From: Podarcis gaigeae
Taxonomy: Eukaryota
Assembly: GCA_964106915.2 (NCBI GenBank)
Contig: OZ066914.1
Strand: one strand, 5' to 3'
Length of the DNA: 64,000 bases
Positions 919-64,000 of this stretch are shown piece by piece (position 1 is the stretch's first letter; each line of letters starts with the position of its first letter). The notes beneath the pieces are model-generated. The model made no database searches. It had not been told where the DNA came from and saw nothing but the letters and a program-made list of their open reading frames with translations. Both the position numbers and the translations under genes were made by a program.

Positions 919-1842
919 TAATGAGGTATTTTAATGAGATCTAAACAGAGAGATACCTTAATGGGGGCCACTAGCCTTTGTCTGAGTCAGTTATCTGGAG
1001 TCTGAGTTATTATCTGTTGTTTTTCTGGAAGAGATGGCGCAACATAAACCAAGTGTGGTGACTTTAAAGGCTGCTGCACAAGTTACATTTTAGGTGACAG
1101 TGATATGCATTTAGGATTACATCCTACTGCGTTCAATAGAGCTTGTTTCAGAGTAATCAAGTTTAGGGCTACATGACTGAAGTTGTATTTTTCTATTCTG
1201 AAAACGTAGCATCTATGTTCCAAAATGTGTAATACCTATAACATACTGCAGGGAAGTTCCAGTTGCCATCGATGTTCAGCAGCTTGTTTTCCTGATAGAA
1301 TGTGTGTGCAAAGTCTTTTCGCTTATCACCATGTAACCAACCAATGGTTCTCACCCATATGTGATTAGGAAAAAAATGTTCAGGGTTTAAGCTCCAGATA
1401 GAAATTATTTCTGGCAAGTTTCATTTTAGAAACTGAGACTCTATGTGGGCAGTAGCCTTCTTCCACCTAACAAAACAATAGTAATAAATCCAAACCTATA
1501 CCCTCTGCAATAATGAAAGTTATAGATTGTTAAGGCTAGCATAAACAGAAAGTAGACTGGAAAAGGAAAATGTTCCCATGTATGTAATGCAAAACCTTGT
1601 CTCAAATGTTGAGTCATAGCTAAACTGGTTTAAGGGAGGTGGAGAACGCAGCTCCACTTTTCAAGGATCCCAAAGGGCTGTAAAAGGTAGGAACTGAAAA
1701 TTGGAGGTGGAGTGTTAAAATGAGAGAAGAGGAAGAGAAAAAGGGTTGTTTAAAAACAAAACAAAAAACCCGGAACCAAATTAGGGGATGAGGGAAAGGA
1801 GAAACTTGGCAATAAGAACATGTCTTTTACTGCATCAATAAG

Positions 1843-1991
1843 CAGTGCTTTTTTCCTGGGGGGTATGCAGGGGTACACATACCCCTAAATATTTTGTGAA
1901 TCCAAGTTTGGCCTCATTGAGGGGCAGTATTTCAAAATGAGTAAGAAAATAAGAGTACCCCTAAACATTTTTTTTTAGAAAAAAAACACTG
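1843..1991. mobile_element. hAT-type MITE
   Basis: TIRs CAGTGcTTTTTT / AAAAAAaCACTG; perfect 8-bp TSD TCAATAAG at 1835-1842 and 1992-1999. Confidence 0.85.
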
Positions 1992-2279
1992 TCAATAAGG
2001 CATCTTTTTAAGCATAGGAAGACACCATGGCCTTCAGAAAGGGTGAGTGGGGAAGGGCTGTAGCTCAGCGATAGAGCACATGGAAAAGATGAAGGCGAGG
2101 GAAGATCCCAGCTGGACACCTCAGAGAGCTGCTGCCAGTCTGTGTAAACAGCACTGGGGTAGAAAGGCTAATGGCCTGGGTTGGTACAAGGCAGATTCCT
2201 ATTTAAGACTTCTGGTTTCTCTTCAGACAAACATCTCAGTGCTCTGTTCCTGGAAGCCAACAAACTGGCTGTTTGTGCC

Positions 2280-4260
2280 CAAGGGCGAAGTGGGGCAGCA
2301 GAAAAGGTGAGTCGGCTGTTCCAAGAGCGCAGCGCCAGCAGCCTCGTGAAGGAGTTTCCTCACGGCAGTGCCGAGCCCAGCAAACCACTAAAAAGCAATC
2401 TGGGAAGGAGGACGCCCGGGTGAATCACTGCTTTCTCCTCTTTTGGCAGAGAAAGAGCCCCACAGTCCTTCGACAGGCTTTGCGAGGGCGACTGTGTGTT
2501 CCCTTATTGCCCCATGGCAGAAAACCCTCCGCCTCGATATCCCCGGAGCCTCCTCGGTGCCTGCTTGTTGCTTCAGCCTGAGCTGTGCTCAGCGGCTTAA
2601 AAGGAAAGAGGAGCGACAGGGCCTGCACACCGCACTGGTTGGAATCCCTGCTCGCGTGAGGGCTGCGCCAGAGTCACGCACTCTCCACATGTGCAGAGGC
2701 GCTCCCACTATCCCTCGCCTGTCCCGACTGAAACCCGGCTCCTTCGGAAGCTGAGCCCCGGCTGCGGTTATGCGAATATCACCACCCCATTCCCCCACCC
2801 CGCCGCTTTAAATGTGGCCAGCTCAGCCTCTCCTGTTGCTGCTGGGCAGGGCCTCCCTTCATCCCCACGACGACAGCGGGATAATTGGATCAGAAGCTCC
2901 CTCCCTCTCGGCCCGAGGCAGGAGGGTGGAGGGAGCCTCCTTTTTCTTGCCCAGCGAGCTCGCGCTCCTCGCTCGCTCGCTCGCTCGCCCGCAGCCCAGG
3001 CCTCTTTGCGCGGGAGTCGCGCCGCGCTCCCCTTCGGAGGTCTCCGGGGGGCTGCGTGGGTCCGCCTACCGCCCGGGAGGCGGGCCGGCCTCCCCCCTCC
3101 CCAAACGCTTCGCTGTCCGTCGGACCGCTTGAAATAGGGGGAGGGGCGACGGAGCGAACGAGAGCGAGAGTTTGCGCCGCAGGAGAGGAGCGAGAGGCGG
3201 ATTGATCCGGGCAGGGTGGGCTTGGCGAGGAACGTGCCCAGCCTTTCCCCCCTCGGACGCTTCGCTGGTTGATCCCGGCAAGCCTCAAGGCTCCTCTCCG
3301 AGCGGGAGTCTCCGGAGTAGCAACTTGGAGAGGTAAGTCTCCTAGTAACCTCCTTCTCTCCCTGCGGGCTCTGGACTACTCGCAGCGTCGCCCATTCTTC
3401 TTCTAGCAGGGAAAAGAAAGGGAGATTCTTTTTTGGGTCCCGTGTCCCCCCCCCCCCGTTTTGGGAGGGTGGGACCGAGGAGGTAAGTTCCTTTCTTGGA
3501 GCTGTTCCCGAGCAAGGAGCCACAGGATCCCTGTTCCCTTTTTTGCTGCGCTCGACCTCCTGCTCTGCGTCGTGGAAAAGGCGCTCCGAGCCCTTTCGCC
3601 TCACCAGACAGAGAGCGATTGTCCTCGAGGCAGCAGCTGCGGCAGCTTCGAGAAGGTAACGCAGCAGCGACTCTCGAGGGAGGGGGGGGGAGGATAACTG
3701 AGTCGTCTTTATTTTCCTCTCAGGACGGCTGGCGGGCGCCCGGGGCTGCTCTCGCCCTCTTTCCACCGTCGTCGTCCTCGCTCCCCTCCTCCTCCTCCTC
3801 CCCAGTCAGGGCTGCTGCGCGTGCGGAGGCGGCGGGGCGCGAGCGCGCTTCGGGTCTCCCACGTTGCTCTCTGCGGACATTCTTTCCGCTGGATTGCGCG
3901 GGGGCAGGTAGGTCGTAGCCTCTGTCCGGGGCGAAACTGCCGCCGCCGCACCCACTTCCAAGATCTCTCCGGTGAAGGAGAGTGGGAATGGGGGGCGGGG
4001 AGGCATGGGTTTCTTATAACGGGAGGGAGGGACAGACGCGCTCGCCAACTTCTTCAGTTTTAAACATTAGGAACTGAGGATTTGGCAGCGTTCTGAACAG
4101 GTTTGTTTCATACTTGTGCTCCTCTCCCTCCTCCTCCCCCCTTTCCTGTCATCGCTAAGGCCGATAACTTTCGGGTGGGAACCCCTCTGCTAGGGAGCAC
4201 CCTCGTCCGATTGGTGCGGAACCGGGCTCGGGCGCGGGAGATAAGATGACAGAGTTCCTT
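2280..4260 (+). promoter_or_regulatory. PACSIN3: CpG island / PACSIN3 promoter with candidate non-coding first exon(s)
   Basis: Dense CpG and high GC; splice donors GAG|GTAAGT at 3333 and 3483, AAG|GTAACG at 3656, CAG|GTAGGT at 3908. It is the only CpG island upstream of the PACSIN3 ATG exon in this window. Confidence 0.75.
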
Positions 4261-22475: not shown

Positions 22476-31282
<8,807 letters not shown>

Positions 31283-32998: not shown

Positions 32999-34943
32999 TC
33001 AAACAGGCATGTACCATTCCATGAGTCCACGCGTTTGCTGAGGCCAGTCCCTGCTGGGGCCATTTGCATTCCCTGTCTGCTGCTTACCATTAGCCACTTT
33101 CAAAGAGCTGCTACATTCATGAGTTGGTGGCATGGACAGCTGCCCTTGCGCTGCCTCAAGCCACAGTTCCAAGAAGGTTCGCACAAGCTCCTGCAGCAGA
33201 GTGACGTAATGGTTGGAAACCACAGCGTTGCTCTCAAAGAGGTGGTTGCCCAGGGATGAGAAAAGACTGCGCTCCTCACTCACATCTGCCAAGATGGCCA
33301 GCTGCCGCGCCAAGAATCCGCGGTGGCTGGAGTCTCCAAGGAACAAAGAAGGCAGGCCAACAACCTGCTTTGCTCTGCGGATCACCTTCCGTACGGACTC
33401 TGCCGGGAGGTACTTTCTTCCCTTGCTCTGCACGCACAGCAGGGCGCTGCCCGCGGGCACACCCTTACAAGGGCACAAGAGGGCAGCGCGGCATTCGGCG
33501 CAGGAGAGGAGAGGCAGCAGCTTCCCCAAAACAACGCAGGAAATGCAGGCGATGGCGTCTTCCTCCAACTCGTCCAGAAAGGCTGGGGCTATGCCCTGTG
33601 TCTCTCGTGGAGGCCCAGTGCCCCAAGGCAAGCGCCAGATCTGCCCGCGAGCCAGAGGCCAGGAAGCCTGCAACTGGAGGTTAGTTCTTCTGCGTAAGGA
33701 TATGTCAAGCAGGTTTGGTGGATCGAGGCCCAGACCAGAAAGAGCTCTGTTCAAGACAAGCCTGTACGCCCGCTGGAAGGTCCATGCGGGGCCAACACCT
33801 TTGTGCCCACGGGCTTGCTGTATGGCTCCCCTGCACCACTCCAGAGGGTCCAGGCTCCACCAACAGGACAGCAAAGAAGCGGTGGGCTCGTCTTCTGCCT
33901 GTAGGTGGGTCTGCGCCAGCCACTGAAAGCTGCGCAGGTTCACCAGGAAGCCAATGAAGCCCCATCGATGCCTGCTCAGCCCTACCAGCTCCCCGGTGGC
34001 CGTGCGGAGTTTGCGAAGCAGGTTCTCGTACTCGTTGCAGAGGTTGTTGAGGGCGCTGGCACTAGCGCGGGAGAGGGGTGCCTTGAAACCTTTCCCATAG
34101 TTGCTGCAGCTGCTGCATGCGTCAAAAATGGCACTCAGCAGCCCGATAAAGTGGGCAGTGGCTTCATGACCCTGAAATTGAGGCAGGCCGAGCCTTGCTG
34201 CAAAATGTAAGGCCTGAACCGTGCCCTCGCTGAACAACTGCGTGGCCCCATTTCCCCACACCTGCTGTTCCTGCGAGCTGATCGCTCTGGCCTGGCATGC
34301 CGCCTGGAGCACCACTTCTTCCTGCAGAGCCCCGAGATGCAGGAGGTAATCCCAGCAGACCGCCTTGCCGCTCACCTGGAGGCTGCCGGCGGCTTGCAGC
34401 AAGCGGTGGATCAGCGTCAACAAATGGCTGGGATCGAAGTAGTATGCTATTTCCAGCGTAGGAGTAGCTGGATGGAAAAATGTGGACTTGACAAAGAGGC
34501 CGTCCACCACCACTCCCAGCCGCCTGGCTGTCTCGATATTGGGAGCTGTGGCATCAGACGTCACAGAGACCACCTGCACGCCAATGTCGTACAGTTTGAG
34601 GATACAGTGGCATAGGAGCTGGGCTTGTATGTTACCTCTAAGGGTGGCAAGGAGGAAGTAGCCAACAGGCACTATCCACCGGCCTTGGAATCCAACAGCC
34701 ACAAGCAGGAGGGCTTCTCCGGCTGCCGAAACCTCATCCGCATCATATTTACCAGCACCAAAGTCCATCAAACCATGCAAACGCCCGGTGGAAGGGTCAT
34801 AGTGGCTTCTCCTTTCCAAAGGGATTGAGCCCATAAGGAGAGAGCACAACTTGAAGGTTTTCTCCCCTGCTTGAGATCTCTCTGCCAGAGCATCGAAGGC
34901 TTGTTGGCTGAATCCCGGCTCGTAATCCAGGTTTGAGAGCCAC
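32999..34943 (-). CDS. THAP9-like exon 6 (transposase core, GTP-binding insertion, C-terminal domain)
   Basis: ctcatag|[14 protein letters not shown]... runs in frame into the 616-aa ORF 32999..34849; aligns to THAP9 WLSKCQPSPGF...CSLL...MDFG...VTSDATA...ATQLFSE. Confidence 0.95.
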
Positions 34944-37900
34944 CTATGAGGGAAGAAGCATGGGAAAGAAAGCTAATCAGCTCCATGTTTGGTTCAAACA
35001 AAAATCTTTCTTCTACTGCCAAACCCCAGAGCCTGAGGATAGTATGTTTCTTTGCCCTCGTGCTTATGAGAAATCAAAGCGTGATGTTACTTTCATAAAC
35101 TATTTTAGGCCATGCTTGTGCTAGAGGGCCTGAGAATAGTTCCACGTGGGAAGGCAGAGCCTGCATCAGTTCTGCTTTGATACTCTGGTTCTCTTTGCAG
35201 TACAGTGGTACCTCGGGTTACATATGCTTCAGGTTACATACGCTTCAGGTTACACACTCCGCTAACCCTGAAATAGTGCTTCAGGTTAAGAACTTTGCTT
35301 CAGGATAAGAACAGAAATCAGGCTCCAGCAGTGCAGCAGCAGCAGGAGGCCCCATTAGCTAAAGTGGTGCTTCAGGTTAAGAACAGTTTCAGGTAAAGAA
35401 CGGACCTCCGGAATGAATTAAGTACTTAACACGAGGTACCACTGTATTTGAAATCAAGAAGAAGAAAAAATCTCCCATAAACCATCAGGTGAGCTCAAAA
35501 GCCTGTTTCCTTCCCAACACACCAAATCATCCATGTGGTTTCCTTTAGGCTAACAGTGCATTTGGCACAGTTTGTGTAGGTCACTCTTGGGTTGCTTCCC
35601 AATGGGCTCCTAGTGCTATCTAATTGTTGCCTTTCTGTAAACTACAAGAAGAATCACAATTGACTTTATATAGTACAGGGCACTTTGTGCTTTTCCCACG
35701 TGTACATCCCCACCACATTGTGTCCAACACTCTCTACCCCACTATTTTATGAGTTCATTTTTTAACACCTATATTTTAATTATCACTGGAAGATGTTTCT
35801 GGCTCTTGAAATTAAAGAGGCACATCATTATAGCACGGTACTTTGATTTTGTTCCTTCCAAGTGCCGGTTGTGTGGTTCTGTGATACACGCGCCTTTGCT
35901 ATGTCTGCTTTTCTTGATGTTTCCATAGTCGAAAGTTGTTTCCCCCATATCTGGGTGCTCACAGAATAGCAGAGTAGGTTTTCTAGTGACACATCTGTTT
36001 TTAGTGTTTTAACCGATTTTTACCATTTTGCATTATATCTCTTGTACAGTGGTACCTCGGGTTACAGACGCTTCAGGTTACAGACCCCGCTAACCCAGAA
36101 ATAGTACCTCGGGTTAAGAACTTTGCTTCAGGATGAGAACAGAAATCGTGTGGCGGCAGCGGGAGGCCCCATTAGCTAAAGTACCTCAGGTTAAGAACAG
36201 TTTGAGGTTAAGGATGGACCTCCAGAACGAATTAAGTTCTTAACCCGAGGTACCACTGTAAACCACATAGAGACTATTGTAGTTAAGTGGCACGTGCGTC
36301 TTATGATATTTTTTCTTTGGTGCCACTGAGTGTTTGGATGGATGGGAGAAGACCAACCAATTCAGACTATCTTTCTTAGGTTGCAATCCTATATGTACGT
36401 ATGTGGGACAGAGAGAGAGAGAGAGAGATCATACTTTTTTTGAGAGAGCAAGACATATTTCTGAGAAAACCTTTAGAGGCTTGCAGTGATGCTTATACCT
36501 CCAAAGTCTAGTTTTATCAACTAGCACAGCTGTTTCCTTTTCCTTGTGAATTGTCCATTCCTCTGCTTCCTCTTGCTAATCAATCTGATCTTACTTTAAC
36601 CTCCAATGGATGAAAAGCTTAACTTCTCTCTCTCTCTCACACACACCACACACACACGGGACACACTACATTCAAGTCTTTTTGTTCACCTTGGCTTTCC
36701 CCTGATCAGAGTTTTGGGCATCACTTACCTCTCTCAAATTGCTTCCATACAACAATGTGATGCCAAGCCAGTGCAGAGGTTGTACTGTCATGCTGTACTA
36801 AACAAGGGACAGCCCAGGTTTAAATTCTGACTCACTCCTGAAGCTCCCTGGATGACCTTGGGTCAGTCACCATCTCTTAGCTTAACTTGCTTCGCAGGGT
36901 TGTTGTGAGGATAAAATGGGGGTTGGACATAGAACCAAGTATGCTACCTTAGGTTCCTTGGAGGAATTTGGGATATAAACATAGGGCCCAATTCAACTAA
37001 CCAGTCTCACTTGTGGAAGCCTGTGCAAGGACTTCCGCTAGTGCAATGAAGGTTTATCCCTATCCTCCCACTGCATGCCCCCTCAGCTCTGAGGTGGTCA
37101 GGAGAACCCCTAGAAGAGCAAGCCTGAGCTGACAGTGTAATCTGTTTAGGGCTACACTGAATTCCTCCCACAATAACCCATGTAAAGTGATCAATCAGTT
37201 GGCTAGTACATTACTCAAATGTTTCAAGGTTCAATTCCAGTAACCATGAAAGATTAACCATTTCCCCCCAGCATGCCTTCAAGGCCAGAGGTTTCTTGAC
37301 CAATTGCATTTGGTGAAATAGCAGTGCAATCCTAGCCTTGTCTACAGAAGTCAGTCCTATTGAATTCCATGGGGCTTACTCAGAATAAACGGTGTTGGGC
37401 AGCAGCCTAAACTATTGTTTACAAAAGTCCATGCATCGATAGTCTTCATGGTGCCACAGGCATCCGTCTGCCCCTTGCAGGATGTCAAACTCATTTTTAT
37501 CTCAGTCATCCAGCCCTAAATCCTGGGTTACCAACAGTCATATCTTCATGGTTTGTCAATTTCCTCCTTTTGCCCAATATTGCATTTTTAATGAAAGCTT
37601 TTCCAGGGGATCTGCAAATGTCTCCTCTGAGGAACCTGATTTTCAGATTTGGCCTCTTCTTTTTGGAACAAAGGAATTTGCCCTACTTTCCTTGAGGGAT
37701 TGTTACATTTCCCTGGAATTTGGTTTCCGGCAACCTGAGTGAAGGCATCCTTGATACAGGGCCTCTGAGGGTGGAATTCCCTTCCCCTCCAGATAACATC
37801 TACGGCAGCTCTTAGAAGTTTTTGCAGCTTGTGAAAAACCTTTTTTTATCTGGACCTTTGGCTGAATTTCTCTCTCCTCTGCACCTCAAACTTCATATTT

Positions 37901-40900
37901 GCCCTTGTGGGTTGTTTGATGTGGAATTTACTTGTGTAGCATGAGAACAGAGGAAGCTGCTTTATACCAAGTCAGACCACTGCTTCATCTAGCTCCACAA
38001 TGTCTGCTCTGGCTGGCAGAAACCCTTTAGGATTTGGGGCAGGAGCCTTTTCCCAGCTCAGGGACTGAACCAGGGACCTTCTGCTTGCAAGTCAGATCCT
38101 CTGCCATTGTGGTCCTTCAGAAGATGGCCCAAGAGGTGTCATTCATGTCTGAGCAGTCAGTGGCAAATCTTACAAAGAAAGCTTGCAGACTACGTTCAGG
38201 AGCTCCTCTAGGTCTGTACGTGAGGTGTCCCGACACAACAAAGTAATGTGTTTTCAGGCATTCCCCACCCCTCTTTCTTTTCTCCCATCTTAAAAGTGTC
38301 ACACTGGAAAAAGTAGTTTCTTCAGCAAGCTAGAATGCATATATAGTGCCTATGTCTGTGCACTGTTGCTTTGCAACGTTTGCCCCTAGTTAACACAAAT
38401 AAGATACAAATAAGAAAGACATACGTGCGAAGGGTGGTGGCCTCTGGGAGCTGGAATGTCTTCTTCACGAATTCATAGGCCTTGGCTGAGAACAAATGCA
38501 GCGAGACGGCAAAGTTGCGGGTGGCAGCTGGGTAGTTCTCACACAGGGCTCCCTCACACTGCAAAGTGAGCTGCAGGTCTGCTGAAGTAAAGAGGGTTCC
38601 TCAAACAAGGGATGGACAGTGAGGTGAAGCTAATTTGGGGGGATGCTGCAGAGGAAGAGTCTTTAACATTGGCCTCAGCAGTGACTCTACTGCGTTCAGA
38701 CTGGGGGCTAGAAGAAGATTCAACATGCTCTATTTTCATGGGGAGGGAAACTGAGTCCAAAACCCAGGAGGATTGGGTGACCAAGAAAGCAGAGAAGGGT
38801 GTACTTAAAGTTATTAAGGGTTTGGGGAAGTGGGGGAGATTTGTAGCAATTGCATACCAAGCCAGTTGGAAATGCTGAAGAGGTAATCAAATGGGGTAGG
38901 GGAGCTGAAACAATGCCAATATATTCCACATCTGGCAACCAATGCGCTCCTTTGGTTTCAGATAGTACATGGGCAGATGAGTCTAAAAAGCCCAGGACAC
39001 AATTTTTTCATGGCCTTCTAGCAGCTACGGTGGTACATTTACCAGAAGTAATGTATTTAGTGTTAACTCTGGAAGTGTATACTTGATACTGACCAAACTA
39101 AGCCTCCTAAAGCAAAATATACATCAGGAGGCATAGTTTGGTTAGAATCAAGTATACACTTCCAGAGTTAACACTAAATACATTACTTCTGGTACGTGAG
39201 CCACTAAAGGGCTGTGAAAATTACCCCACTCATCTTAACCAAGCCTTGAAGCTGGTTTGTATCATGGCTCCCTCCTTGGAACCTTGACTGATTCTGAAAC
39301 TGCACTGGTCTTATTGTAAAGGCCCTCTGGCATGAAGAAGAGCCCCTTGGGCAAGGCGTACGGTGCTTACCGCTGAACTGGGAGCGCAGCATGTGTTCCA
39401 TGTCCTTCTGGAGGAGATGCTGCTCCCGCAGGCTCTCCAGCACACTCCACAGCTCCTGCTGATAATAGGAGAGGCGGCGTTGGGCTGCGTCCTGCTCCCG
39501 TTCAGTCCCCTGCACTGGGCCAGTGGGAATCAGAGACTTGGTTCTGCTGCCCATAGCTTCACTCAGGCTATACTGATGCTCCGCTTGGATGAGTTCCACC
39601 TACAGGAAGACAAAGAAGACCCGTTGCTCCATCTCTTTAATTCGCTCACCATAACTTCCATGTCCTCCCGGCACCCGATGTTTGTCCATGCAGATTTTCC
39701 ACAAAGGGCTGGATTTGGTTATTCCTGAAAGCTAAACTGACTTCACCTTTCTCCTTTGCCTTGATTTTCCTTTTAGCCTCTCACCACAGCCAGAGTAAAC
39801 CCTTCCCAGACTCCCTTCTCCCATCAGATTCACAATAGTTAGTGGATGTGGCCACTTTCCCTCTTTAAAGCTAACTTAGGATACCGTGATGGAAGTCAGG
39901 TTCTGCAGGTTCTCCAGGAGGAAAGAATGTAAAGTTCTACCTTTGTACAGTAGGCTGGTTTCTACTCACACTTACACACCACCTCCATCCAGGCCCACAG
40001 GAAGCATTATTTGAGGTCAAGGATAAATTCCAGCCAGGCACAAACACTCAAGGAGGACGCAATCTAACAACGAGGGATGTGGCCTTGGAAGAGTGGGTGT
40101 GGCCTGGGGAGTGTCCTGAGGGCCAGAGAGGGACCTGGAGGGCCACATTTCACCCATGGGCTTGAGGTTCCCCATCTCGGCTATAGGCTTTGTCCAAGTC
40201 CCTATGGTAATATAAGCTACATGCTACAGCATTTAGTGACACAAAGTTTTGTAATTTTAGATTCTGGACTTAACGGTCTCCTGGTGGGGAGGAGGGGCTC
40301 TTCATATGGTAATGTGCATTACTTTTTTCAGAATTTGGAGCCAGCTCTGCTGTGTTTAGTGTTCTCCTGCTCATTCTTCTGTGCAGGGCCCTTGACCTCT
40401 GCCCCAAAGTCCTTCCCAACAGTTGCATTGCTGGCATTGGAGAAGGCACCAGCTACCCTCGCTGGTATACGTACTGCTTTGGCTTGTGCAGGCGATGAGT
40501 CAGCTGCTGGAGTAGCTTCGCTGATACTAGCCACTGGCCAACTGATGCCCATGGTTTTGACAGACTTTGATGGATGTTTCCCTTTTGTTGGTTCCTGTAT
40601 TGAGAAAGAGTTCAAATGAATTAGACACAGCAATTCGACCAAAAAAAGAAAAAGGCCTGGTTTGATAATTTAATGCTGTAGTAGAAGGCAAAAGTGAACA
40701 AAAAATAATCCCCAACAACATTGCCATGGCATTACTGGAACTAATTAAGCATACTTCAAACATTAGAGGCTGGATCCAGGTTATGCCTTAGTCCCATACA
40801 ATTTACTCATGACTATCTTAAGTTTCATCAATTTAACTGGGTGAAAAGTTAACCACTGGGTTGCAATCCTAGATACACTTATCTCAAAGTCCCACTGAAG

Positions 40901-43900
40901 TCAGTGGGATTTACTTATGTGTAGACATGTGTAGATTGTGGCATTATGTTTGATCCAACCTACTCTCTACGTTATTTATTCATTGTCAGGCAAACCCAGA
41001 TTTATTTCAAATGAAGAAAAAAGGCATTTCTGAGACCAGAATACAGATGAGGGCTTACGTATTAGAATAGCCATCCACTGCAAACCTAATTCACTGCACA
41101 ATAAAGGTAACATTGTCAGAGACAGTTGTTCTCTTAGCCTCCTCCGTGGTGTGCTGGTTTTCCAGTGAAGTGTCTGACTTCAAACACAGAATTCCTCACC
41201 TGTGCTATGAAATAGTATAGTCTGAAGGTTAAGACACATCCCTTTTCCTCAACACCAGCTGTCAGGCATGGGAAGGGAATGAATTCTGGACTCTCGGAAC
41301 AGAGACACGCAATTCAGTGCTGCCTACACTGATTTGACAACAACTCTCCATGGTTCCAGGCAGGAGTCTTTAGCCAGCATAGAATCATAGAATTGGAAGA
41401 GACCACAAGGGCCGTCGAGTCCAACCCCCTGCCAAGCAGGAAACACCATCAAAGCACTCTTGACATATGGTTGTCAAGCCTCTGCTTAAAGACCTCCAAA
41501 GAAGGAGAGTCCACCACACTCCTTGGCAGCAAATTCCACTGTCGAACAGCTCTTACTGTCAGGAAGTTCTTCCTAATGTTTAGGTGGAATCTTCTTTCTT
41601 GTAGTTTGGATCCATTGCTCCATGTCCGCTTCTCTGGAGCAGCAGAAAATAACCTTTCTCCCTCCTCTATGTGACATCCTTTTATATATTTGAACATGGC
41701 TATCATATCACCCTTTAACCTCCTCCAGGCTAAATATGCCCAGCTCCCTTAGCCGTTCCTCATAAGGCAGCGTTTCTAGGCCTTTGACCATTTTGGTTGC
41801 CCTCCTCTGGACACATTCCAGTTTGTCAGTGTCCTTCTTGAACTGTGGTGCCCAGAACTGGACACAGTACTCCAGGTGAGGTCTGACCAGAGCAGAATAC
41901 AGTGGCACTATTACTTCCCTTGATCTAGATGCTATACTCCTATTGATGCAGCCCAGAATTGCATTGGCTTTTTTAGCTGCCGCGTCACACTGTGGGCTCA
42001 TGTCAAGTTTGTGGTCAACCAAGACTCCTAGATCCTTTTCATATGTACTGCTCTCAAGCACTACCTCGAGATGCCAGACATTGCACCGGGGGCCTTCTAC
42101 ATGCAATGCAAATATTCTGCCCCTGCATCACCTTGCTTCCCCATTATTATCAGTGGGATATGGAAGGAAAACTGGTTTTGGAAGTAAAGCTTTGCAGTCT
42201 TTTCAGACAGAGGCCTAATCTCAAGCATGCCAGTTCTTCAGGTGCAGATTATTGTGAACTGTTAGTCGTATATATCAAACTTCCTAAACCATTTCCGATG
42301 CTGTTGGGCTACAGGGTACACTAGAAAGGACTATAAAAATCTATGCACAATGACAGCTACAGAAAGTACACCAAAGGCAAAAGAAAAAGAAGAAAATTGC
42401 ACAGATGAATATGATTCTTAATAAAATGCTTCTTAATAAAAACTGCTTGGAACATTCCCCCACCCCACTGCAGCACACCTAAGCATATTCCCCCCGCCCC
42501 CACTTTGACGTAGTGGGGACCATATCCATCTCTGCAGCTGTCCCTTTTTTTGTTTTAGGACTATGGAAATCCTCTGCTGAGCCCACAAGCCGGTGGCAGA
42601 ACAGGAAAAGTGCTGGGAGACCTTGACCTTGATCAAAAGCTGCAATGCTAAATGCACTTACACAAAGAGGGGCACAACCAATAGGATACAATGACACTTA
42701 ACCTCTGACTAAATATGGATAGGACTGTTGGAAATGTTTGATAACAAAGTGTATAAGAAAGAAGGGAAACTCTGCAATGTGTCTTCCTCTGGGAGAGTTA
42801 TCAGCTGAAGTGGGGGATACAAATTTTCAAAATAAGATAAATCCTGTGTATGTGTGTGTGTGTGTGTGTATCTCAAAAACTACTGCTACTTAAAGTGTCC
42901 CTGAATTTGGTGCATTTGCCTGACCACCTTATTCCTGCTATTCCCTGACTCTTCTGTGTCTTGTCCCTCTGTTGAAGGACAAGGGTGCCAATATATTGAC
43001 TACTGTACAACACTTAACATACATTTAAGCACTTTAATAAATAGATTTCCCCACTGAATATTGCTCCCAGTACAGCAATCACTTCTTTGTTCCTGTCTTC
43101 CATTTCTACATACTATATTTCATGTCAGGCTATCATCTGGACACCCCTTCTATTGCCAACAAATGGTCTGTCCTAGCAGGTATCTGGATAAAGAAGTTCT
43201 TTTGTGGCTCCTTTTTCACTATATGACCCTTTGTCCGAGCAGCTGAATCAGAGACTCATAAAATGTGTTGGCACTTCTTCAGCTTTCCAGTTCCTGCTAT
43301 TACTGAGCAAAAAGCTGATGAACCACAGTTCTTCTCTTCCATTCCCTTTACACATACACCCCCAAGGCCCACTACCAATTCCCAAACTCTCGTCCTCCCT
43401 TACTGCATTATCCTTCCTTCAACCCAAGTTTGCAAGTTTAAGTAAATCCTCTCCCTATTCTGAATCCTGCTGCTTTTGTCAATGTGCCTTTTTCATCCCC
43501 ACATTCCCACTTTCAATTCACGCTCTTGCACCTATGTTCAGTGGATTACATACTAGGAAATGCGTCTATCTACTCAACTGTCTTCAAAAATAAACACAGT
43601 CACCTACAGCTTATTTTTCTTCATTTAACGGATGTTCTTAGAAGCCATTGCTTCCTGAGCAGCAGGGGTGAGGAAACGTGGGCGCAAGAGCTGCACTGCC
43701 CCATGGAGAACCTTACAAGGGCCATATGCAAGCCATGGAGGAGGCCAGGGCAAAATTGGGTGGAGCACCGGATGGGACTCTGATCTTAGTACCATAGGCT
43801 ACATCCTAGTCATGCAAAAGTCATAACAATCTGTACTCCCTGACACCCACATACACACTTCTTTCCATTCACACAAGCAAAAGGCATCATCACAGACATC

Positions 43901-46900
43901 TTCCAGCCAGGCAACAGTTCTCAAGGAGGGCACAGAACAGGGACAATGAAGGGTGTGGCCTAGTGAGAGTCATGAGGGCCTGAAAGAAAAGCCTAGAGAG
44001 CCACATTCACCCTCAAACCTGAGGTTTCCTAACACTGCTGAATGAGAAGGGAAAAGTACCATGGAAAGTGAGGCTGTATCAAATCTTATTCCTATGCAGA
44101 GAAGACCCACTGAAACTAACAGACATGACTAACTTGGGTTCATTAATTTTAATGGGCCTACACCAAGCAAAATTTAGTTGGAGTCAACCCTTAGAGGTTG
44201 CAGGTTTTAGACTGGACCAGAACTTGAGGTAGCACATATTTTAGGGACAAAGGAGATCTAGTAGGAGAGCCCTTGAGGTTAGTAAATGAGAACCAAGCTG
44301 CAGCTCAGAAATCCCTCAGTATGTCCCAAATTGCTGAGCAAGGCAGACAATTAAAAAGTCCAGCTAAGCTGCCAAGGTGAGCTGCACTACAGCTTTCCTG
44401 ACCAGGGAAGAGTCACTAGCAGGAAGCCTTTCCTGTCCTGTACAAGGAAGACAAACATCCCTAATGCCAGCAATTCTTACATTTCTGCTGCCTTCACAGA
44501 AAACCAGGGGATGGGATCGGAAGCATCCACCTCTGCAGCTCTGTATTGTCAGAGACTAGGAATGCTGACAGAAATTATGAGGCATTTGAGGGACCTGGGT
44601 AAGATTTAGGGATGAGAACCAGCCTTCTTGTTCCTGTACCACAACTCTTTCCCCTCTAGAACAGCATGACTCACACCAAGGAGGACAATAGTTAAACCCC
44701 TGGGAAGTTAGTTTGCTTCTGTGAGTTGTGCAATGTCATTTCCCCACCCCTTTGGCTATAAAAAATTCAAATGACTTTCCATTCAAATGAATTTATTTCA
44801 ACTTTTGGAAAGAGGCAAGGAGGGTGCACTCTCCCCAGGCGCTCATTTTTTGGACTGAGGTAGCAAATCCAGTTATTACACCAGGGCCTTCTCACAGGAT
44901 GTTGCGGTTACCTCACTAATCCAAACCAGATGTTGAGGATCCCAGAGACTATTGCTTTCTTCATGCAGCAACCCAGGCCTCTCCAAGATGTGAGCAAGAT
45001 ATCAAGGCTGAGAGAAACCCCCTCAGAAAGTCCTAACAGTACCAAATAAGGCGACTCCATTTAGAAAGCATTTTGCATCTGTCTAGTTCTTTAAGAGGCC
45101 TGTGATTGTTCTACAAAGGCCCCAAACTAAACTCAGTTCTCCTTCTGTGAGAAGGATTACAAAACAGGCCACTATGAAGGCTGAAGCCATGTACAGCCAG
45201 GTAGGCTGCATCTGGATAAAATCACTTCTTTTGGGATGCTTCCCACCTCCACCCCGGCCATCTTCTGTGTTTGTCATTTCCTTCTACCTTCTATGACCCA
45301 AGATGAAAGCTTTCAATTGCCATAGGTAGCGTAAGATCTTCTGCCTCAATCCACAAAGGAGATCTACCTAGCCCAGCATCTTGCTTCAAAGAGTAACAAG
45401 CCACATGCTGCTAGGGACTTGCTTCAAATCTTAATGTAACCCAGGATACCCTGCCCTCTTGGACATTTTGTTCCTGCTGTAGCATGACATTTAACAACAG
45501 CTGTACATACTGAAACTTTTCGTGGACAGTGCTTGCATTATTCAGGGACTGAAGACAAGGAGGCAGGGCACTCTCCTGAAACAAACACTTGGCAGTTAAG
45601 AGCAATGTGCCTATGTTGCAGCTTCAGAGGCACACAGATCACCCATTCTGAAAGAAAACAACAGGAAACACAGGACAGAGAGCCTCAGGGAGCTACGTTT
45701 TGGGCAGCCTATGCACTGATGAATACAACCAGCAATAAAAGGGGAGGGGGGGAAAGGCCCCACATTGCAGCCAAATCTGATGTTCCCTCTTGTGGCAAAA
45801 CCAAAACCTTATTCTGTGCAGAGATTCTTTTAGATTGGATCAGCAATACTTCCAGAAAAACACCTCCCTACACCATGGAAGCGTGGAAAAAAGATTAGAT
45901 ATGAAGCAAACACAAAGAATTATGAAGTGGATATAAACAGTGAAGGACACACAGTCTTTTTAAACGTCTTAGCAAGGACAGAAAACATGATGTTCCGATG
46001 TTGTACAGTACTAAGAAACTCTGCCAAAGCCCACCAATCAGGGACTCTAGGTGATGGTGCCCACAAATGGAGGGAGCCAGCGAACTCTTATTGACTCAAA
46101 CACACACACACACACACAAAGAGCAGATGCCCCTTCATCACAACATGAGAAACCAGCAGTAACTCTGCTGCTGGAAGCCCCAAAACATCCCAATAAGCAG
46201 GGGTTCAAGACTCCTTTTGCTGCTCTCAAACACAATTTTGTAGCCAAAACACGCAAAGGAAAGGAAGAAGATCCCACCCAACACAGCACTCATGTTGTTC
46301 CCATAGCACATAAAGAGCCGATCCCAAGTGGCGCCGGAAAGAGGCAAGTTGAGGGGCAGTTCAAGGTCCAGGCAAGAAGTGTTCCAGTCTGGTACTGAGG
46401 TCTTTGAGCTGGAGCTACCGGAACCACACCCAGGGGTCCAGCTGAGTTTCATGAGCTGTTGTCAAAGAAAGACTCCCAAGTCTGGTACTCCCATTTACGG
46501 ACAGGTTTCCATTTGCTGTTTAAAACATTGTTGCTCCTACAAGCTCAGGGTCCATCCAGCCTTAGCTTCTGAGGCCAAACTCTCCCACTGTGCCAACTGC
46601 CCCACAGCGGCCTTGTCCAAGAGTCCCAACTTACTCATCTCCCCAGATCTAGTCAGGTCTGGGGCTTTGCTAAGTACTGGGGGCTCCAGGTCATCCTCAG
46701 ATGAGGAATTCTCCAGCTAATACATAGCACAGGGGTAGGCAAACTAAGGCCCGGGGGACGGATGCAGCCCAATCGCCTTCTCAATCCGGCCCACGGACAG
46801 TCCGGGAATCAGCGTGTTTTTACATGAGTAGAATGTGTCCTTTTATTTAAAATGCATCTCTGGGTTATTTGTGGGGCACAGGAATTCATTCATCCCCCCC

Positions 46901-49900
46901 AAAAAAAATATAGTCCACCCCCCCACATGGTCTGAGGGACAGTGGACTGGCCCACGGCTGAAAAAGGTTGCTGACCCCTAACATAGCAGCAGTAGTGGGG
47001 GCTCTCCAGTCTGCAAGATTATTTAGGCCCACCAGGCTGCCCCATTTGGCCTGTGAAGGCATTTTGGTCAATCCAAGCCCATCTGTCCTACACCGGATGT
47101 CATATCAGGACGTCATCAGGTGTCAGGCAAACAAAGACAAAGCTGGGCCAAAAACGGTCTTGCTTGCAAAGCAGCTATTTGCAGGCACCTACAAAGTACT
47201 GTGCCCTTGGTTTGATTTCAAGCTGTGCAGGTCAAAGGAAGATGGGTCACCTGACATTACGGTGATGTTGGCTGACTGACAGGTGGGCAACCCCATCCAC
47301 CCATTAAAGTTGGCCCCTGGGTGGTGGGGAACATAAGGACCCTCAAATCTTCTGACCAGCCAATTCCCCACTCCAGAATAGGGCATGGAGCTGAGAAGCA
47401 ACCCATGCCCACTCAGCTAGTGTAACTGTAGTATTGAATTACAATGAAATTCTCTCCCACTGAATAATATTAATTATTATTATTATTACTTAAACCGCAT
47501 ACATCCAACTGGCTTGCCCCAGACACTCTGGGCATCTTTCAACATAATATAAAAACACAGTGAGACATCAAACATTAAAAACTTCCCAATACAGGGCTGT
47601 ATTTGGAAAGTTGTGTAATTGTTCATTCTTTGACATCTGATGTGGGGGCATTCAACAGGGCGAGTGCCACTACTGAGAAGGCTCTCTGCCTGGTTCCGTG
47701 TAACTTCACTTCTCACAATGAGGGAATCACCAGAAGGCCCTCAGAACTGGACCTCAGAAGAACTGTGGGCGAAGCTGCTCTTTTAGGTATACAGAGCCGA
47801 GGCCATGAAATCAGTGAGACCTGAAATTTCTTAAACTTGAATAGATTCTGCCTGAACTTGCAAGCAGAAATGGAAACACTGCAACCAGGGTGTGGCGCAA
47901 ACTCAGTGAAACGTTGCACAAAGTGGCCATTGTCTGCCGAGCAATCATGTGTGGGTTTGCATATTGCAGGGTTCCCCACAAAGCACTCCAGTGTTAAAAA
48001 AACAAAACCCCAACCTTCTAGATGTCCGTCCCCCCGTTATGTAAACCTAATAAGCAACCTGGAGGAAACTAAAATCTGGATCAAGTAGAGGAACTCAGGA
48101 ACTCTAAAAAAGAAATAGAAACATAGAGATACCCTGAAATACACATAAATTGGTCAGTCAACACGTTTTGAATTAATGCTCAAGGTGGTATAGAAAAGTT
48201 CAATACAATGGAAATAATAGCTAAATATAACATCCATTCTTCCTGTGTGCCAATATAATGTTACTGTTAAAACCTTCCTACCCTACAGCAATGAAATATG
48301 GAGTGACACTGTGACATAAAGAGGAAATGGGGGGGGGGGAGATGACATTTTATTACAGTGGTACCTTGGGTTACATACACTTCAGGTTACACACTCCGCT
48401 AACCCAGAAATAGTGCTTCAGGTTAAGAACTTTGCTTCAGGGTAAGAACAGAAATCGGGCTCTGGCGGCGCAGCGGCGGCAGGAGGCCCCATTAGCTAAA
48501 GTGGTGTTTCAGGTTAAGAACAGTTTCAGGTTAAGAACGGACCTCCAGAACGAATTAAGTACTTAACCTGAGGTACCACTGTACAAGCAAATCTTCCAGA
48601 AGCATAGAAATGAACAGCGCAACTAGATAATGTGCAGGGGTGGGGGAAGTGTATTTACAGAACAATCCTATTCTCGTGCTATGACAAAGAGGCAGCAGAT
48701 AAGTCACCACTTTGTTGGCTGAATAACTGCCACACCCAATGCAAGCTCAACCTGAAACAGTGTAAGCAGTATAAACACAACAGACACAAACTCACTGCCC
48801 CTAGAAACATCCTAAAGCCCACCAGTTAAGGACTATGCCTGGAATGAGAGCCAGTGTGGCGTAGTAGGGAGAGTACTGGACTAGGACCTGGAAGAATGGA
48901 GTTCAAATCCCCACTCGGATATGAACTGCACTGGGTGACTTTGCGCTAGTCACAATCTCTCAGCCTCACCTACTGTACAAGTGTGTTGCAACAGTGAAAT
49001 GGAGATGGGGACAACCATGTATACTACCTTGAACTCCCGGAGGAAAGGCAGGATATAAATGTAATAGTGAAGGATGCTCACCAATGGGGCATTTGGCCTC
49101 CCGCTCACCCCTCCTAGCCCCAACATCCAATTATAGGTGCTAGGAGCACAAGGGTTGCAGGAGAAGCCCTGGTTTGTTAGAAAAGTGCAGCAGGACTTCT
49201 GCTAAACCCTGCAGCCCCTCAACCAGCAGAGAGCAGGCCTTTTCTGTGGTAGTTCCTCATCTGTGGAATGCTCTCCCCAGAAAGGCTTACCTGCCACCAT
49301 CATTACATGTTTTTAGGCGCCAAGGAAAAACATTCCTCTTTACCCAGGCCTTCAGCCAATAAATAATCTAAGGCTTGTTAAATGTGTTTGTGGTAGGGAC
49401 TTGTTATTGTGAATATTTTATTAGCATGCATCTATAATTATGCTCTAGGGACGCAGGTGGCGCTGTGGGTTAAAGCCTCAGCGCCTAGGACTTGCCGATT
49501 GAAAGGTCGGCGGTTCGAATCCCTGCGACGGGGTGCGCTCCCGCTGCTCGGTCCCAGCGCCTGCCAACCTAGCAGTTCGAAAGCACCTCCGGGTGCAAGT
49601 AGATAAATAGGGACCGCTTACCAGCGGGAAGGTAAACGGCGTTTCCGTGTGCAGCTCTGGCTCGCCAGAGCAGTGATGTCACGCTGGGCACGTGACCCGG
49701 AAGTGTCTCCGGACAGCGCTGGCCCCTGGCCTCTTGAGTGAGATGGGCGCACAACCCCAGAGTCTGGCAAGACTGGCCCGTACGGGCAGGGGTACCTTTA
49801 CCTTTACCTTTATAATTATGCTCTGCATTATGCTTTTTATTATTATGCTCCGTGAAATATGTTCTTGATGTTGTACACCACCCTGGGATCTTCTGATAAA

Positions 49901-52107
49901 GGGTGGTATATAAACTGAATAAATAATAATAACAATAATAATCTTCACTGTAGGATTGTGCCCTTAAGTTTCTGGTATCTTCTTACTCCAAGCACCTGAC
50001 ATGTCCTCCACCACACAGCATATATTGTATAATAATATTACGGCTCCCTCCAATGGATCATGCTGTTGATGCACTGGGAGAGGGAATCAAACACTTCTCC
50101 AAACTTTGAGGCTACTTGTTGCTGGGAACAGAGCAAGGGCAACAACATGAATTGGTGTGAGATAATCTTCAAGTGTACCAACATAGTGTCAGCAGCACTT
50201 TTTTTTATTATGACTGCTTGCAGTCCTGTCTGCCTTGGTAAAAGAAACAGTTTTTACCCCATGAAATAAGGCAGCATGGCTTGGATCATGAGCAAGAACA
50301 TCAACACACACGAAAAGAAGAGTAGCAATTACTGACAAAAACACATGACCAGCATGTCAAAGTTTAGAGCCCTGCTGGATCATATCAAAGGGCTGTTTAG
50401 ACCAGTAGTGGCACACCTTTTTTCAGACCAGGCTCCCTATTTCCTTCTGAGCGCCACATGTCAGTGGTGGGTGGGGCAGCAGCAAAAGAAGGCAGAGCAA
50501 TCAATGCAAATTTAACCTTTCTATACACACACATACTCATACACCTCTCTTTATATTCTATCCAGACAAGCCAGTGGCGTAGCGTGGGGGGTGCAGGGGG
50601 GGCCGGCCGCACCGGGTGCAACATCTGGGGGTTAGGGTTAGGGGGCGCAAATCCACGGGTTAGGGGGTGCAAATTACTTGCCTTGCCCCGGGTACTGACA
50701 ACCCACGCTACGCCACTGAGACAAGCAAGCCACATCATTAGAATTCCAACTAGGCAACAATATTTAGGGTGTGAAGGGTATCACCTGGGAAGAGTTCCAA
50801 GTGCCAGTGAGAGAGGTTTGGAGAACTGTGTTTGGTCACCAGGCCTGAGGTTCTCCATCCCTGACTGAGACCAACATCTTGTTTCCCAGTTACCAACCAG
50901 ATGCCTCTGGGCAAAAACCGCCCCCCCCCCCCCAGTAAATGGCAATTCAGAGACAGTTGGAGCTGGCCTATGACCATCATGATTAGTTACAACTGATACT
51001 TTTAAAAGCAAAGTGGGAAATAAGATTATCTAAATCCTCATGTTAAAACTCGACTGTTAGCTGACTGTGCCTCTTCAGACTGTGGGTGGGTGATCAAATG
51101 TAGAAATGCTTTCTGATATTTTAGGTATACACTTGTCTGTGCAGAAAAATTATCAGTGGGAGGGAATGTGGACATTCATCCCTCACTTGTAGTCTTTAAG
51201 AATTTGGTGGAGCACATGGTTTCTATACAACTGGGCATCATAGGAGCCAACTCCTAGGGGCTGTGGGGGCTTTGGCCCCCACAATAAAATATTTAACCAC
51301 AATGTTGATGGGCATTTCTATTCAAATGGTGTGTGTGCACTGTGTCATGTGATTGATTATGTGGGGCGGGGTTTACCTGGGCCCCCACAATATTTTATTT
51401 AAATTGGCACCCCTGCTGGGCATTCAAAAGCATCACTGCCTCTGACAGCAGTGCAGACCCATGAATCCTCTTTTATAGGCACCTAAGCTGGTGGCCACCA
51501 CTGGGGGAGTGATCACAGATGGAGGCTAATATTCTGCCTTAAACCATGGTAGAGCATTGGCTACTTGGTGGCCCTGCCTGGCAGCACTCTCCTCCCTTCT
51601 CTGGCACTAGGATACCTTGAAGGAGAACACGGAGGGGATCACACCCGCCTTCAGCCTTTTCTGTCCTCCATACACCTCGAAATCATCCTGGAAGAAATGA
51701 TCTGAGCAGATGCAGGCGCCTGAGCCTGGGATCCACAGCTTCCTGGAGCCTGGCTCAATGCGATTCACAGCCAGCATCCACTTCTTCCTCAGTTCATGGG
51801 CTTTGGGGAAGCTGGAGGAGGAAGAAGAGATGGGAAACTATAAATCCCACTGACTTTCCCCACATGGCTGATGGTGCAGGTGACGACACCGACTGACACA
51901 AAGCCCCGCCCACAACCCACACCTGGCCCCGCCCCTTGTTAACCAAAGCCCCGCCCCCTCCGCTAATAGGCTTACAACCAGCCACGCTCTCCATGAGGAG
52001 GCCCCATTACGGTATTCAGATGCAGACCTGTGGAATGAGAGGCCCTTGGCCCGGTTCTCCCGCGTGTCCCGGTTGGGACAGTTAACGGCCGAGCAGGCTT
52101 TAGGCAT
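32999..52107 (-). CDS. THAP9-like P-element transposase-derived protein, ~907 aa; complement(join(52028..52107,51616..51811,40475..40594,39371..39599,38425..38578,32999..34943))
   Basis: Six GT-AG exons join in phase to 2724 nt with no stops. THAP C2CH zinc finger (CSAVNC...ICSDHF...GVIPSVF), EHQY HCF-1 motif plus coiled coil, HTH region, RNase H-like core (VTSDATA, FDPSH, ATQLFSE, DPLE) and C-terminal CAEC. Colinear with recalled human THAP9. Exon 3 boundaries are the least certain. Confidence 0.9.
35203..35444 (+). mobile_element. Tc1/mariner-type MITE, young family copy 2
   Basis: TA-CAGTGGTACCTC...GAGGTACCACTG-TA; internal tandem duplication of ggttacata(t/c)gcttca. Confidence 0.9.
36047..36258 (+). 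mobile_element. Tc1/mariner-type MITE, young family copy 3
   Basis: Same TIRs and TA TSD. Confidence 0.9.
36805..36985 (+). mobile_element. Old CORE/Squam3-like SINE fragment
   Basis: gatgaccttgggtcagtcac...cttcgcagggttgttgtgaggataaaatgggg; similar to 48847-49066. Confidence 0.55.
38425..38578 (-). CDS. THAP9-like exon 5 (HTH region)
   Basis: cagcag|[10 protein letters not shown]...[38 protein letters not shown]|gtatgt; aligns to THAP9 FACTLYLCSSKVYDYVRKILKLPHSSILRT. Tandem NAGNAG acceptor. Confidence 0.92.
39040..39194. repeat. Long inverted repeat / hairpin (69-bp arms, 17-nt loop)
   Basis: 39040-39108 is the reverse complement of 39126-39194 with 3 mismatches; the outer 48 bp are perfect. 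Confidence 0.92.
39371..39599 (-). CDS. THAP9-like exon 4 (HCF-1-binding motif and coiled coil)
   Basis: ctgtag|[12 protein letters not shown]...[24 protein letters not shown]|gtaagc; aligns to THAP9 EDHNYSL...LLRAQFSD. Confidence 0.9.
40475..40594 (-). CDS. THAP9-like exon 3 (low-complexity linker)
   Basis: caatacag|[10 protein letters not shown]...AQAKA|gtacgt; 120 nt, phase 0-0. No homology support, so predicted from splice signals and frame only. Confidence 0.6.
41378..42057 (-). mobile_element. CR1 LINE 5'-truncated 3' fragment
   Basis: ORF2 C-terminal peptides EKDLGVLVD...[20 protein letters not shown]...VQRRATKM and [12 protein letters not shown]; (ATTCTATG)n tail; frameshifted. Confidence 0.95.
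46730..46980. mobile_element. hAT-type MITE
   Basis: Ends CAGGGGTAGGCAAAC / GTTGCTGACCCCTA; perfect 8-bp TSD ACATAGCA at 46722-46729 and 46981-46988. Confidence 0.88.
47470..47830 (-). mobile_element. L2 LINE 3' fragment
   Basis: (TTA)n tail and gccactactgagaaggc, the reverse of the AFSVVA motif of L2 ORF2. Confidence 0.55.
48356..48581 (+). mobile_element. Tc1/mariner-type MITE, young family copy 4
   Basis: TA-CAGTGGTACC...GAGGTACCACTG-TA. Confidence 0.9.
48847..49066 (+). mobile_element. tRNA-derived CORE/Squam3-like SINE
   Basis: gagagccagtgtggcgtagt...gagttcaaatcc (A/B boxes), CORE gggtgactttg...agtcac, ggatataaat tail. Confidence 0.7.
49220..49935 (+). mobile_element. L2 LINE 3' end interrupted by a Sauria SINE
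   Basis: Encodes [14 protein letters not shown]...KTFLF; its tail (gggtggtatataaa...aataat) resumes after the SINE. Confidence 0.6.
49447..49810 (+). mobile_element. Full-length Sauria SINE
   Basis: gggacgcaggtggcgctgtgggtt head, B box GGTTCGAATCC, (ACCTTT)3 tail, 14-bp TSD TATAATTATGCTCT at 49433-49446 and 49811-49824. Confidence 0.92.
50572..50718. mobile_element. hAT-type MITE with internal TTAGGG units
   Basis: Perfect 17-bp TIR CAGTGGCGTAGCGTGGG; 8-bp TSD AGACAAGC at 50564-50571 and 50719-50726. Confidence 0.9.
51239..51415. mobile_element. hAT-type MITE
   Basis: Imperfect TIRs; perfect 8-bp TSD CTGGGCAT at 51231-51238 and 51416-51423. Confidence 0.75.
51616..51811 (-). CDS. THAP9-like exon 2 (THAP domain C-half)
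   Basis: ctccag|[66 protein letters not shown]|gtatcc; not in the ORF track. Confidence 0.95.
52028..52107 (-). CDS. THAP9-like exon 1 (THAP domain N-half)
   Basis: [28 protein letters not shown]|gtctgc; aligns to THAP9 MTRSCSAVGCSTRDTVLSRERGLSFH. Confidence 0.93.
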
Positions 52108-52309
52108 CGTCTCCGACTCCGCGGCGAAAAGCCCCAATCCCGGCTCCCGCCAAGCGCGCTTACTTTGCCTCGAGCGTCATGGCGGCAACGTCCGCGGCGC
52201 ACTCTGAACTGACCCCGGAGGCGACCCGTCGGAGGGAAACACCTCGCGCGCGGATTGGTCCCCGCGGCGACCTGTTGCCGGCCGCGGTGGGTGCTGGGAA
52301 AAAGAAAAC

Positions 52310-64000
<11,691 letters not shown>

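Follow-up and report, generated by a model that had tools for sequence, protein, structure and literature searches.

THAP9 and the P-element transposases are the closest described systems to the gene reported here. Hammer et al. (2005), as cited in PMC10983969, described one domestication that is common to chicken and human. Mutants of human THAP9 (hTHAP9) at D304, D374 and E613 lose both excision and integration (PMC8230255), and the zebrafish element Pdre2 has terminal inverted repeats (TIRs) of 13 bp and an 8-bp target-site duplication (TSD) (PMC10983969). A survey of THAP9 drew on NCBI for its orthologues, among them "6 lizards" (PMC10824691). The word "paralog" is absent from this survey and from a 2026 preprint on the RNase H-like domain. 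Here we analyzed a 64,000-nt stretch of contig OZ066914.1 of the lizard Podarcis gaigeae (assembly GCA_964106915.2), hereafter called the window, and found that it carries a second reptile gene derived from a P-element transposase, which is a paralogue of the known THAP9. A published description of this gene was not found in a literature coverage that is incomplete, and this is absence of evidence only.

We refer to the window gene and its reptile orthologues as clade A and to canonical THAP9 as clade B. Our preferred reading, to which we assign a probability of about 0.8, is that the window gene is a single-copy, immobile host gene that descends from a P-element transposase and is an ancient paralogue of canonical THAP9. 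As judged from the sequences, the split between the two clades most likely predates the amniote ancestor, A having later disappeared from mammals and birds.

The gene occupies 52107..32999 of the minus strand. A scripted exon-by-exon check of the model, which was predicted from the sequence, gave six exons and five introns, all of the GT...AG type. The exon end phases (2,0,0,1,2) are mutually compatible, and none of the six exons contains an in-frame stop. The coding total is 2727 nt, which corresponds to 908 amino acids plus the stop; the first-pass annotation of this DNA, made by a model from the letters, had likewise proposed six exons in an open frame of ~907 amino acids. The lengths of introns 1-5 are 216, 11021, 875, 789 and 3481 nt, and the 64,000 nt contain no runs of N. 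The window exons were searched individually, and full-length database proteins of close relatives were used as stand-ins for the whole protein. Exon 1 matched a related database protein over residues 1-26 at 100% identity (tblastn). Pfam matches were obtained to THAP on exon 2, to Tnp_P_element, a helix-turn-helix (HTH) domain, on exon 5 (2.9e-14), and to TNP-like_RNaseH_N (2.5e-39), TNP-like_GBD (4.2e-28) and THAP9_C (1.7e-11) on exon 6. The order HTH, RNase H N-terminal part, GTP-binding insertion and THAP9 C-terminal domain is that of the P-element transposase/THAP9 superfamily. Further, the residues of the THAP C2CH zinc finger (C5, C10, C62, H65, P29, W38 and P86) are present, the C-terminal CxxC is C742-x2-C745, and E139, H140 and Y142 of the EHQY motif are unchanged across 11 clade-A proteins. 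The Pfam and residue checks thus agree with the earlier description of a THAP finger, EHQY motif, HTH, RNase H-like core and C-terminal CxxC.

Cluster look-ups detected both A and B proteins in Chelonia mydas, Chelydra serpentina and Crocodylus porosus. In Chelonia mydas, the clade-A gene is located on a chromosome of 134.4 Mb and THAP9 on a chromosome of 142.3 Mb. Because turtles and crocodilians carry both genes, the window gene is a paralogue and not the orthologue of THAP9. Exon 6 was 97% identical to the "DNA transposase THAP9" of Podarcis raffonei and, among the matches listed, 67-79% identical to the proteins of other lizards and snakes, 63-64% to those of turtles and 59% to that of alligator; the window protein differed from the lacertid proteins in the collection at 20-28 exon 6 residues. 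When 1.84 billion representatives were searched exhaustively, the nearest proteins outside clade A were THAP9 of the gecko Eublepharis and THAP9 of a tinamou (35-36% identity). In a tree of 58 proteins, including 30 other P-like transposases, clades A and B were separate sister clades, with Shimodaira-Hasegawa-like approximate likelihood ratio test (SH-aLRT) values of 100 for A, 100 for B and 99 for A+B. The window gene fell outside the mammalian and avian THAP9 clade and was sister to the whole THAP9 clade. Sequences of the amphibians Bombina and Pleurodeles were placed outside A+B, as its sister, with weak support (81). The "THAP9"-type genes of these two amphibians span 35 and 90 kb and are therefore multi-exon.

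The exons of clade A measured 80/196/120/229/157/1945 nt in the window, 80/196/120/229/154/1948 nt in alligator and 80/196/120/220/157/1960 nt in green turtle, with phases 2,0,0,1,2 in all three. Those of clade B measured 80/196/310/151/1945 nt in gecko and 80/196/307/151/1963 nt in turtle, with phases 2,0,1,2. In a joint alignment, four of the five clade-A introns shared column and phase with all four introns of gecko and turtle THAP9; one of these was offset by a single column, which is the extra Ala of a tandem acceptor. This acceptor of exon 5 (38575-38584) reads cag/cag, so that use of the second AG would remove one Ala, and that Ala alone separates isoforms X1 and X2 as annotated in Podarcis and Zootoca (SQFS[A]DLQL). 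The intron after exon 3 is specific to clade A, without a counterpart in gecko or turtle THAP9, and the 120-nt exon 3 was also found in the clade-A genes of alligator, turtle and boa. Because four intron positions and phases are shared and the two clades are sisters, clade A would be a DNA-level copy of an intron-bearing ancestor and not a retroposed one. As a separate observation, the annotated exon 5 of Candoia aspera (locus L004, 21245-21479) is 235 nt long, compared with 154-157 nt in the other clade-A genes, and its 26-residue insert is unmatched in other species; it is probably the result of a mis-called donor.

The ratio of nonsynonymous to synonymous substitution rates (dN/dS) on exon 6 was calculated by the Nei-Gojobori method (NG86, 641-648 codons) for pairs drawn from the window, P. 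raffonei, Candoia, Chelydra and Alligator. It was 0.14-0.26 in all 10 pairs; the closest pair gave 0.26 at dS = 0.053. The first-pass annotation had called the gene probably a paralogue of THAP9 or an independently domesticated related P element, with THAP9-like intron positions and under purifying selection, and had proposed a tree with THAP9 and fish and amphibian P elements together with a dN/dS calculation as checks. The paralogy, the intron positions and the selection were all supported: turtles and crocodilians have both genes, which fall into two sister clades with full support, four introns agree in position and phase, and dN/dS on exon 6 is low.

Two copies of one intron-bearing P-element family might instead have inserted at two sites while still mobile, each being tamed separately, which we consider unlikely. 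Both clades have long stems (0.9 for A, the longest branch in the tree, and 0.49 for B), the two loci have no shared paralogous neighbours and no visible block duplication, and P elements can carry introns, as in Drosophila P. These points would suit two separate events. However, A and B are mutual closest relatives among the 1.84 billion representatives, and no mobile element branched between A and B in the 58-protein tree. The four common intron positions and the identical lengths of exon 1 and exon 2 also argue against separate taming, as does the mobile relative L009, which is intronless. L009 (ENA metagenome scaffold, 51-3506) is a complete P-like transposon with 53-nt TIRs (89% complementary) and one uninterrupted open reading frame (ORF) of 904 amino acids, in which all six Pfam domains, including RNaseH_C, are detected.

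It is highly improbable that clade A is a fast-evolving duplicate of THAP9 specific to sauropsids, which only seems to predate amniotes. Among the matches listed, A was seen only in sauropsids, and its stem is the longest branch mentioned above, as would be expected of such a duplicate. In contrast, clade B, which holds both mammals and sauropsids, was monophyletic with an SH-aLRT of 100. When A and sauropsid B were forced together, the log-likelihood (lnL) dropped by 48.3 and the approximately unbiased (AU) test rejected this grouping (p-AU = 3.6e-5; 25 rows, LG+G4). Further, crown A evolves more slowly than B, with a lizard-turtle identity of ~65% in A compared with 57% in B.

A single THAP9 orthologue that was translocated would fit the NCBI name THAP9 and the lack of a lacertid canonical THAP9 among the matches listed, but it is refuted, since single turtle and crocodilian genomes hold both genes, on different chromosomes or contigs; the clades are only ~36% identical, and an ArfGap/PACSIN-type arrangement is common to lizard, boa, turtle and alligator. 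The first-pass annotation had suggested that a missing THAP9 at its usual locus, together with a reciprocal best match to THAP9, would reveal such an orthologue. This test is misleading here, because lacertids seem to be without an annotated canonical THAP9 and the reciprocal best match is THAP9. Finally, a P-like transposon that is active or was so recently, for which the intact frame and several retained catalytic residues might speak, has next to no probability in view of the lack of bracketing TIRs, an 11-kb intron, repeat insertions in several introns, one copy in the window, synteny kept across reptile orders and a dN/dS well below 1. None of the 67 inverted repeats of the window brackets the gene, as the first-pass annotation had claimed, while the same search, as a positive control, gave the 53-nt TIRs around L009. 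Look-ups in relatives gave one contig per protein.

Several points weigh against our reading of an ancient, immobile paralogue. The grouping rejected by the AU test was named after the tree was seen, and the result could be affected by long-branch effects, the clade stems of 0.9 and 0.49 being long. The absence of A in birds and mammals and that of B in lacertids come from annotated proteins among the matches listed in word-index searches. Further, the RNaseH_C model (PF21789) did not match the window protein at E<=0.01, and the first catalytic Asp of the Drosophila P transposase (DmTNP) is replaced by Gly. The flanking loci are without sign of a large block duplication, and the copy may have been of transposition type, from a still-mobile ancestor. 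Finally, the function of the protein is entirely inferred.

The species distribution of the two genes was as follows. Neither the exon 6 search nor a word-index search with an alignment of 11 proteins gave a bird or mammal clade-A protein among the matches listed, and the latter search added no further proteins. Among those of a gecko-seeded search, clade B included mammals, ~80 birds, turtles, crocodilians and two squamates, the only squamates with canonical THAP9 being Eublepharis and Hemicordylus (a cordylid). Squamates with clade A among the matches listed were lacertids, Rhineura, Varanus, Elgaria, Anolis, Phrynocephalus and snakes. In the annotated proteomes, no squamate carrying both A and B and no canonical THAP9 from lacertids was among the matches listed. 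A king cobra protein (36% identical overall) was considered as a third lineage and was rejected, since its gene model spans the PACSIN-type gene and is probably a chimera. This model of Ophiophagus hannah, named "THAP domain-containing protein 9, partial" (locus L005, 10001-57718), extends over 47 kb in a fragmented assembly and encloses the PACSIN-type gene on the opposite strand.

These data are consistent with the following origin of the paralogue. Before mammals and sauropsids diverged, one intron-bearing ancestor would have given rise to both genes by DNA-level copying. The A copy would then have come to lie between the ArfGap and PACSIN-type genes and would share with the former a promoter region in a CpG island. 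Lizards, snakes, turtles and crocodilians would have retained it, and birds and mammals would apparently have lost it. A is seemingly the sole copy remaining in lacertids, which would account for the name THAP9 given by annotation pipelines. The protein may be a nuclear, sequence-specific DNA-binding factor in which the THAP C2CH finger would contact DNA, the EHQY motif would recruit HCF-1, and the leucine-heptad region and the transposase core could mediate self-assembly. Purifying selection has maintained the core with its RNase H-like, GTP-binding and C-terminal parts, and expression would be driven from the promoter region shared with the ArfGap gene.

To map the active site, a family profile including clade A was aligned to the DmTNP structure (PDB 6p5a, residues 103-560, E = 4.3e-66); the numbering of this alignment recovers D230, D303 and E531. 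The window residues at these positions are G299, D391 and E629, so that the complete Drosophila DDE triad is not present. Published equivalences between DmTNP and hTHAP9 are D252 with D304, D303 with D374, D339 with D414, D444 with D519 and E531 with E613, D230 having none (PMC8230255 Table 1). At the five hTHAP9 positions, the window protein has the acidic residues D321, D391, D431, D535 and E629. The window motif SLDPLEW aligned with QDIVEHF of DmTNP, and E629 is kept despite the lack of a PF21789 match at the above threshold; precomputed matches to PF21789 were weak in the turtle and alligator clade-A proteins. Because the acidic residues that are important in the mutagenesis of human THAP9 are all present, residual DNA cleavage by the clade-A protein is possible but unproven.

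We surveyed these positions in 145 proteins. At the D374 position, Asp was found in all mammalian THAP9 (31/31) and all clade-A proteins (20/20), Gly in 78 of 80 birds and Ala in 13 of 13 turtle and crocodilian THAP9; gecko THAP9 also has Ala. At the D230 position, 19 of 20 clade-A proteins have Gly, mammalian THAP9 has Lys, and turtle and crocodilian THAP9 have Asp or Glu. By this comparison, the member of the Drosophila triad that has been lost differs between the two reptile paralogues, and clade A is, at the predicted active site, closer to mammalian THAP9 than reptile THAP9 is. In both crocodilian clade-A proteins, the catalytic Glu E629 is replaced by Gln (LDPLQW), and in Candoia and one other squamate clade-A protein, D321 is replaced by Asn; both changes are further, lineage-specific losses. 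In the Bombina and Pleurodeles sequences, Asn occupies the D304 position, and Asp is missing from the D374 position.

Together, the distribution and the residues suggest a wider scenario, which we put forward tentatively and regard as rather doubtful. Amniotes would ancestrally have had two tamed genes that were reciprocally sorted: THAP9 only in mammals and birds, both in turtles and crocodilians, THAP9 in geckos and cordylids, and A only in lacertids, anguimorphs, iguanians and snakes. In sauropsids, A, with the human-type residues (equivalents of D304, D374 and E613), might then be the copy that can still cut DNA.

The coordinates of the gene and its surroundings are listed in Table 1. The ArfGap gene starts 202 bp from the ATG of the window gene in head-to-head orientation, and a head-to-head gap of ~165-200 bp was seen again in four other species. 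On the other side, the PACSIN-type gene is convergent (tail-to-tail), with a stop-to-stop distance of ~1.7 kb. We take the ArfGap neighbour to be ARFGAP2 rather than ARFGAP3 and the gene with FCH and SH3 domains to be PACSIN3. The same three-gene order, that is, a gene of ~540 amino acids head-to-head, the clade-A gene, and an FCH/SH3 gene tail-to-tail, was present in Podarcis raffonei, Candoia, Chelonia and Alligator; the synteny check proposed in the first-pass annotation thus showed conservation. The gecko canonical THAP9 adjoins a LIN54-type gene with a TCR domain, as opposed to the ArfGap and PACSIN-type flanks of the window gene, and the earlier placement at a non-THAP9 locus was therefore correct. 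The human THAP9 neighbourhood is presumably on the LIN54/SEC31A side. At the turtle THAP9 locus (L008), no neighbour was found within 10 kb.

Table 1. Coordinates of the window gene, its neighbours and other features in the 64,000-nt window.
Feature	Coordinates	Strand	Description
Coding exon 1, 80 nt	52107..52028	-	ATG at 52107; first half of THAP zinc finger (C5, C10); end phase 2
Coding exon 2, 196 nt	51811..51616	-	Second half of THAP zinc finger (P29, W38, C62, H65, P86); Pfam THAP; end phase 0
Coding exon 3, 120 nt	40594..40475	-	Linker region; phase 0 to 0
Coding exon 4, 229 nt	39599..39371	-	EHQY HCF-1-binding-type motif and leucine heptad region; end phase 1
Coding exon 5, 157 nt	38581..38425	-	P-element HTH; end phase 2
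Coding exon 6, 1945 nt	34943..32999	-	RNase H-like N, GTP-binding insertion domain, putative diverged C part of RNase H, C-terminal domain of THAP9 with CxxC; includes stop at 32999-33001
ArfGap-domain neighbour, first two coding exons	52310..52905	+	Zinc-finger exon within 52786-52905; Pfam ArfGap 6.3e-20
FCH and SH3 (PACSIN-type) neighbour, coding exons	22915..31282	+	Pfam FCH 2.3e-15, SH3 4.8e-09
CpG-rich region	52000..52600		Spans or overlaps both divergent start codons (52107 -, 52310 +)
Palindromic insertion in intron 4, resembling a miniature inverted-repeat transposable element (MITE)	39030..39204		79-nt arms, 91% complementary
ORF remnant of long interspersed nuclear element (LINE) type in intron 2 (11 kb)	41449..42106	-	ORFs in window

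At 52000-52399, the GC content is 0.65-0.69 and the observed/expected ratio of CpG is 1.07-1.11. The CpG-rich region in Table 1 is, by its composition and position, a probable shared bidirectional promoter of the window gene and the ArfGap gene. A second GC-rich block (GC 0.62) is located at 2001-4000 of the window, ~19 kb upstream of where PACSIN-type coding exons were first seen; the promoter and first exon of the PACSIN-type gene, or of another gene, may lie there.

The first-pass annotation had listed insertions of CR1, L2, short interspersed nuclear elements and MITEs in the introns. This was borne out in part: a MITE-like insertion, repeated short elements and a LINE-type remnant were found. 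The LINE-like ORFs of intron 2 had no Pfam match and are, by their motif, tentatively of CR1/L2 type. A motif of ~25 nt (TACAGTGGTACCTCGGGTTA...) occurs in at least 8 copies in both orientations at 35190-36271 (intron 5) and 48353-48587 (intron 2), and these copies resemble the termini of a family of short interspersed elements or MITEs.

If our reading is true, a second copy, equally old and selectively maintained, would alter the picture of a single domestication. The two tamed copies with their complementary active-site losses offer a natural comparison, and lineages in which either copy was lost offer a way to study the role of each gene. There is also an annotation trap: the NCBI entries named "DNA transposase THAP9" in lizards and snakes are the clade-A paralogue, and the green turtle counterpart is annotated as "uncharacterized protein LOC102930032". 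Because the orthologues in the published survey were taken from NCBI without mention of paralogues, class-specific THAP9 patterns published for reptiles may mix two genes.

In comparison with known systems, the window gene shares its protein architecture with mobile vertebrate-type P elements (Pdre2 and L009); unlike these, it has neither TIRs nor a TSD. With the Drosophila P transposase (6p5a), it shares conserved counterparts of D303, E531, D339-x2-H and D444 (see also PMC8230255). It differs from that transposase in that the catalytic D230 (FDEM) is replaced by Gly (LMGS), and in being a multi-exon host gene without TIRs or a TSD. Canonical THAP9 is most similar. Both genes encode, in order, a THAP finger, an HCF-1-binding motif, a leucine-rich region, an HTH and an RNase H-like core with a GTP-binding insertion and a C-terminal CxxC, and both have first and second exons of 80 and 196 nt and four intron positions and phases in common. 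Both are apparently single-copy, lack TIRs and have a head-to-head neighbour, and the equivalents of D304, D374, D414, D519 and E613 of hTHAP9 are kept in the window gene. In contrast, the window gene is ~36% identical to canonical THAP9, belongs to its own clade, has one extra intron and is flanked by ArfGap and PACSIN-type genes, whereas THAP9 has a LIN54-type neighbour. Further, sauropsid THAP9 has Ala or Gly at the D374 position, where clade A has Asp, and some sauropsid THAP9s have Asp or Glu at the D230 position, where clade A has Gly.

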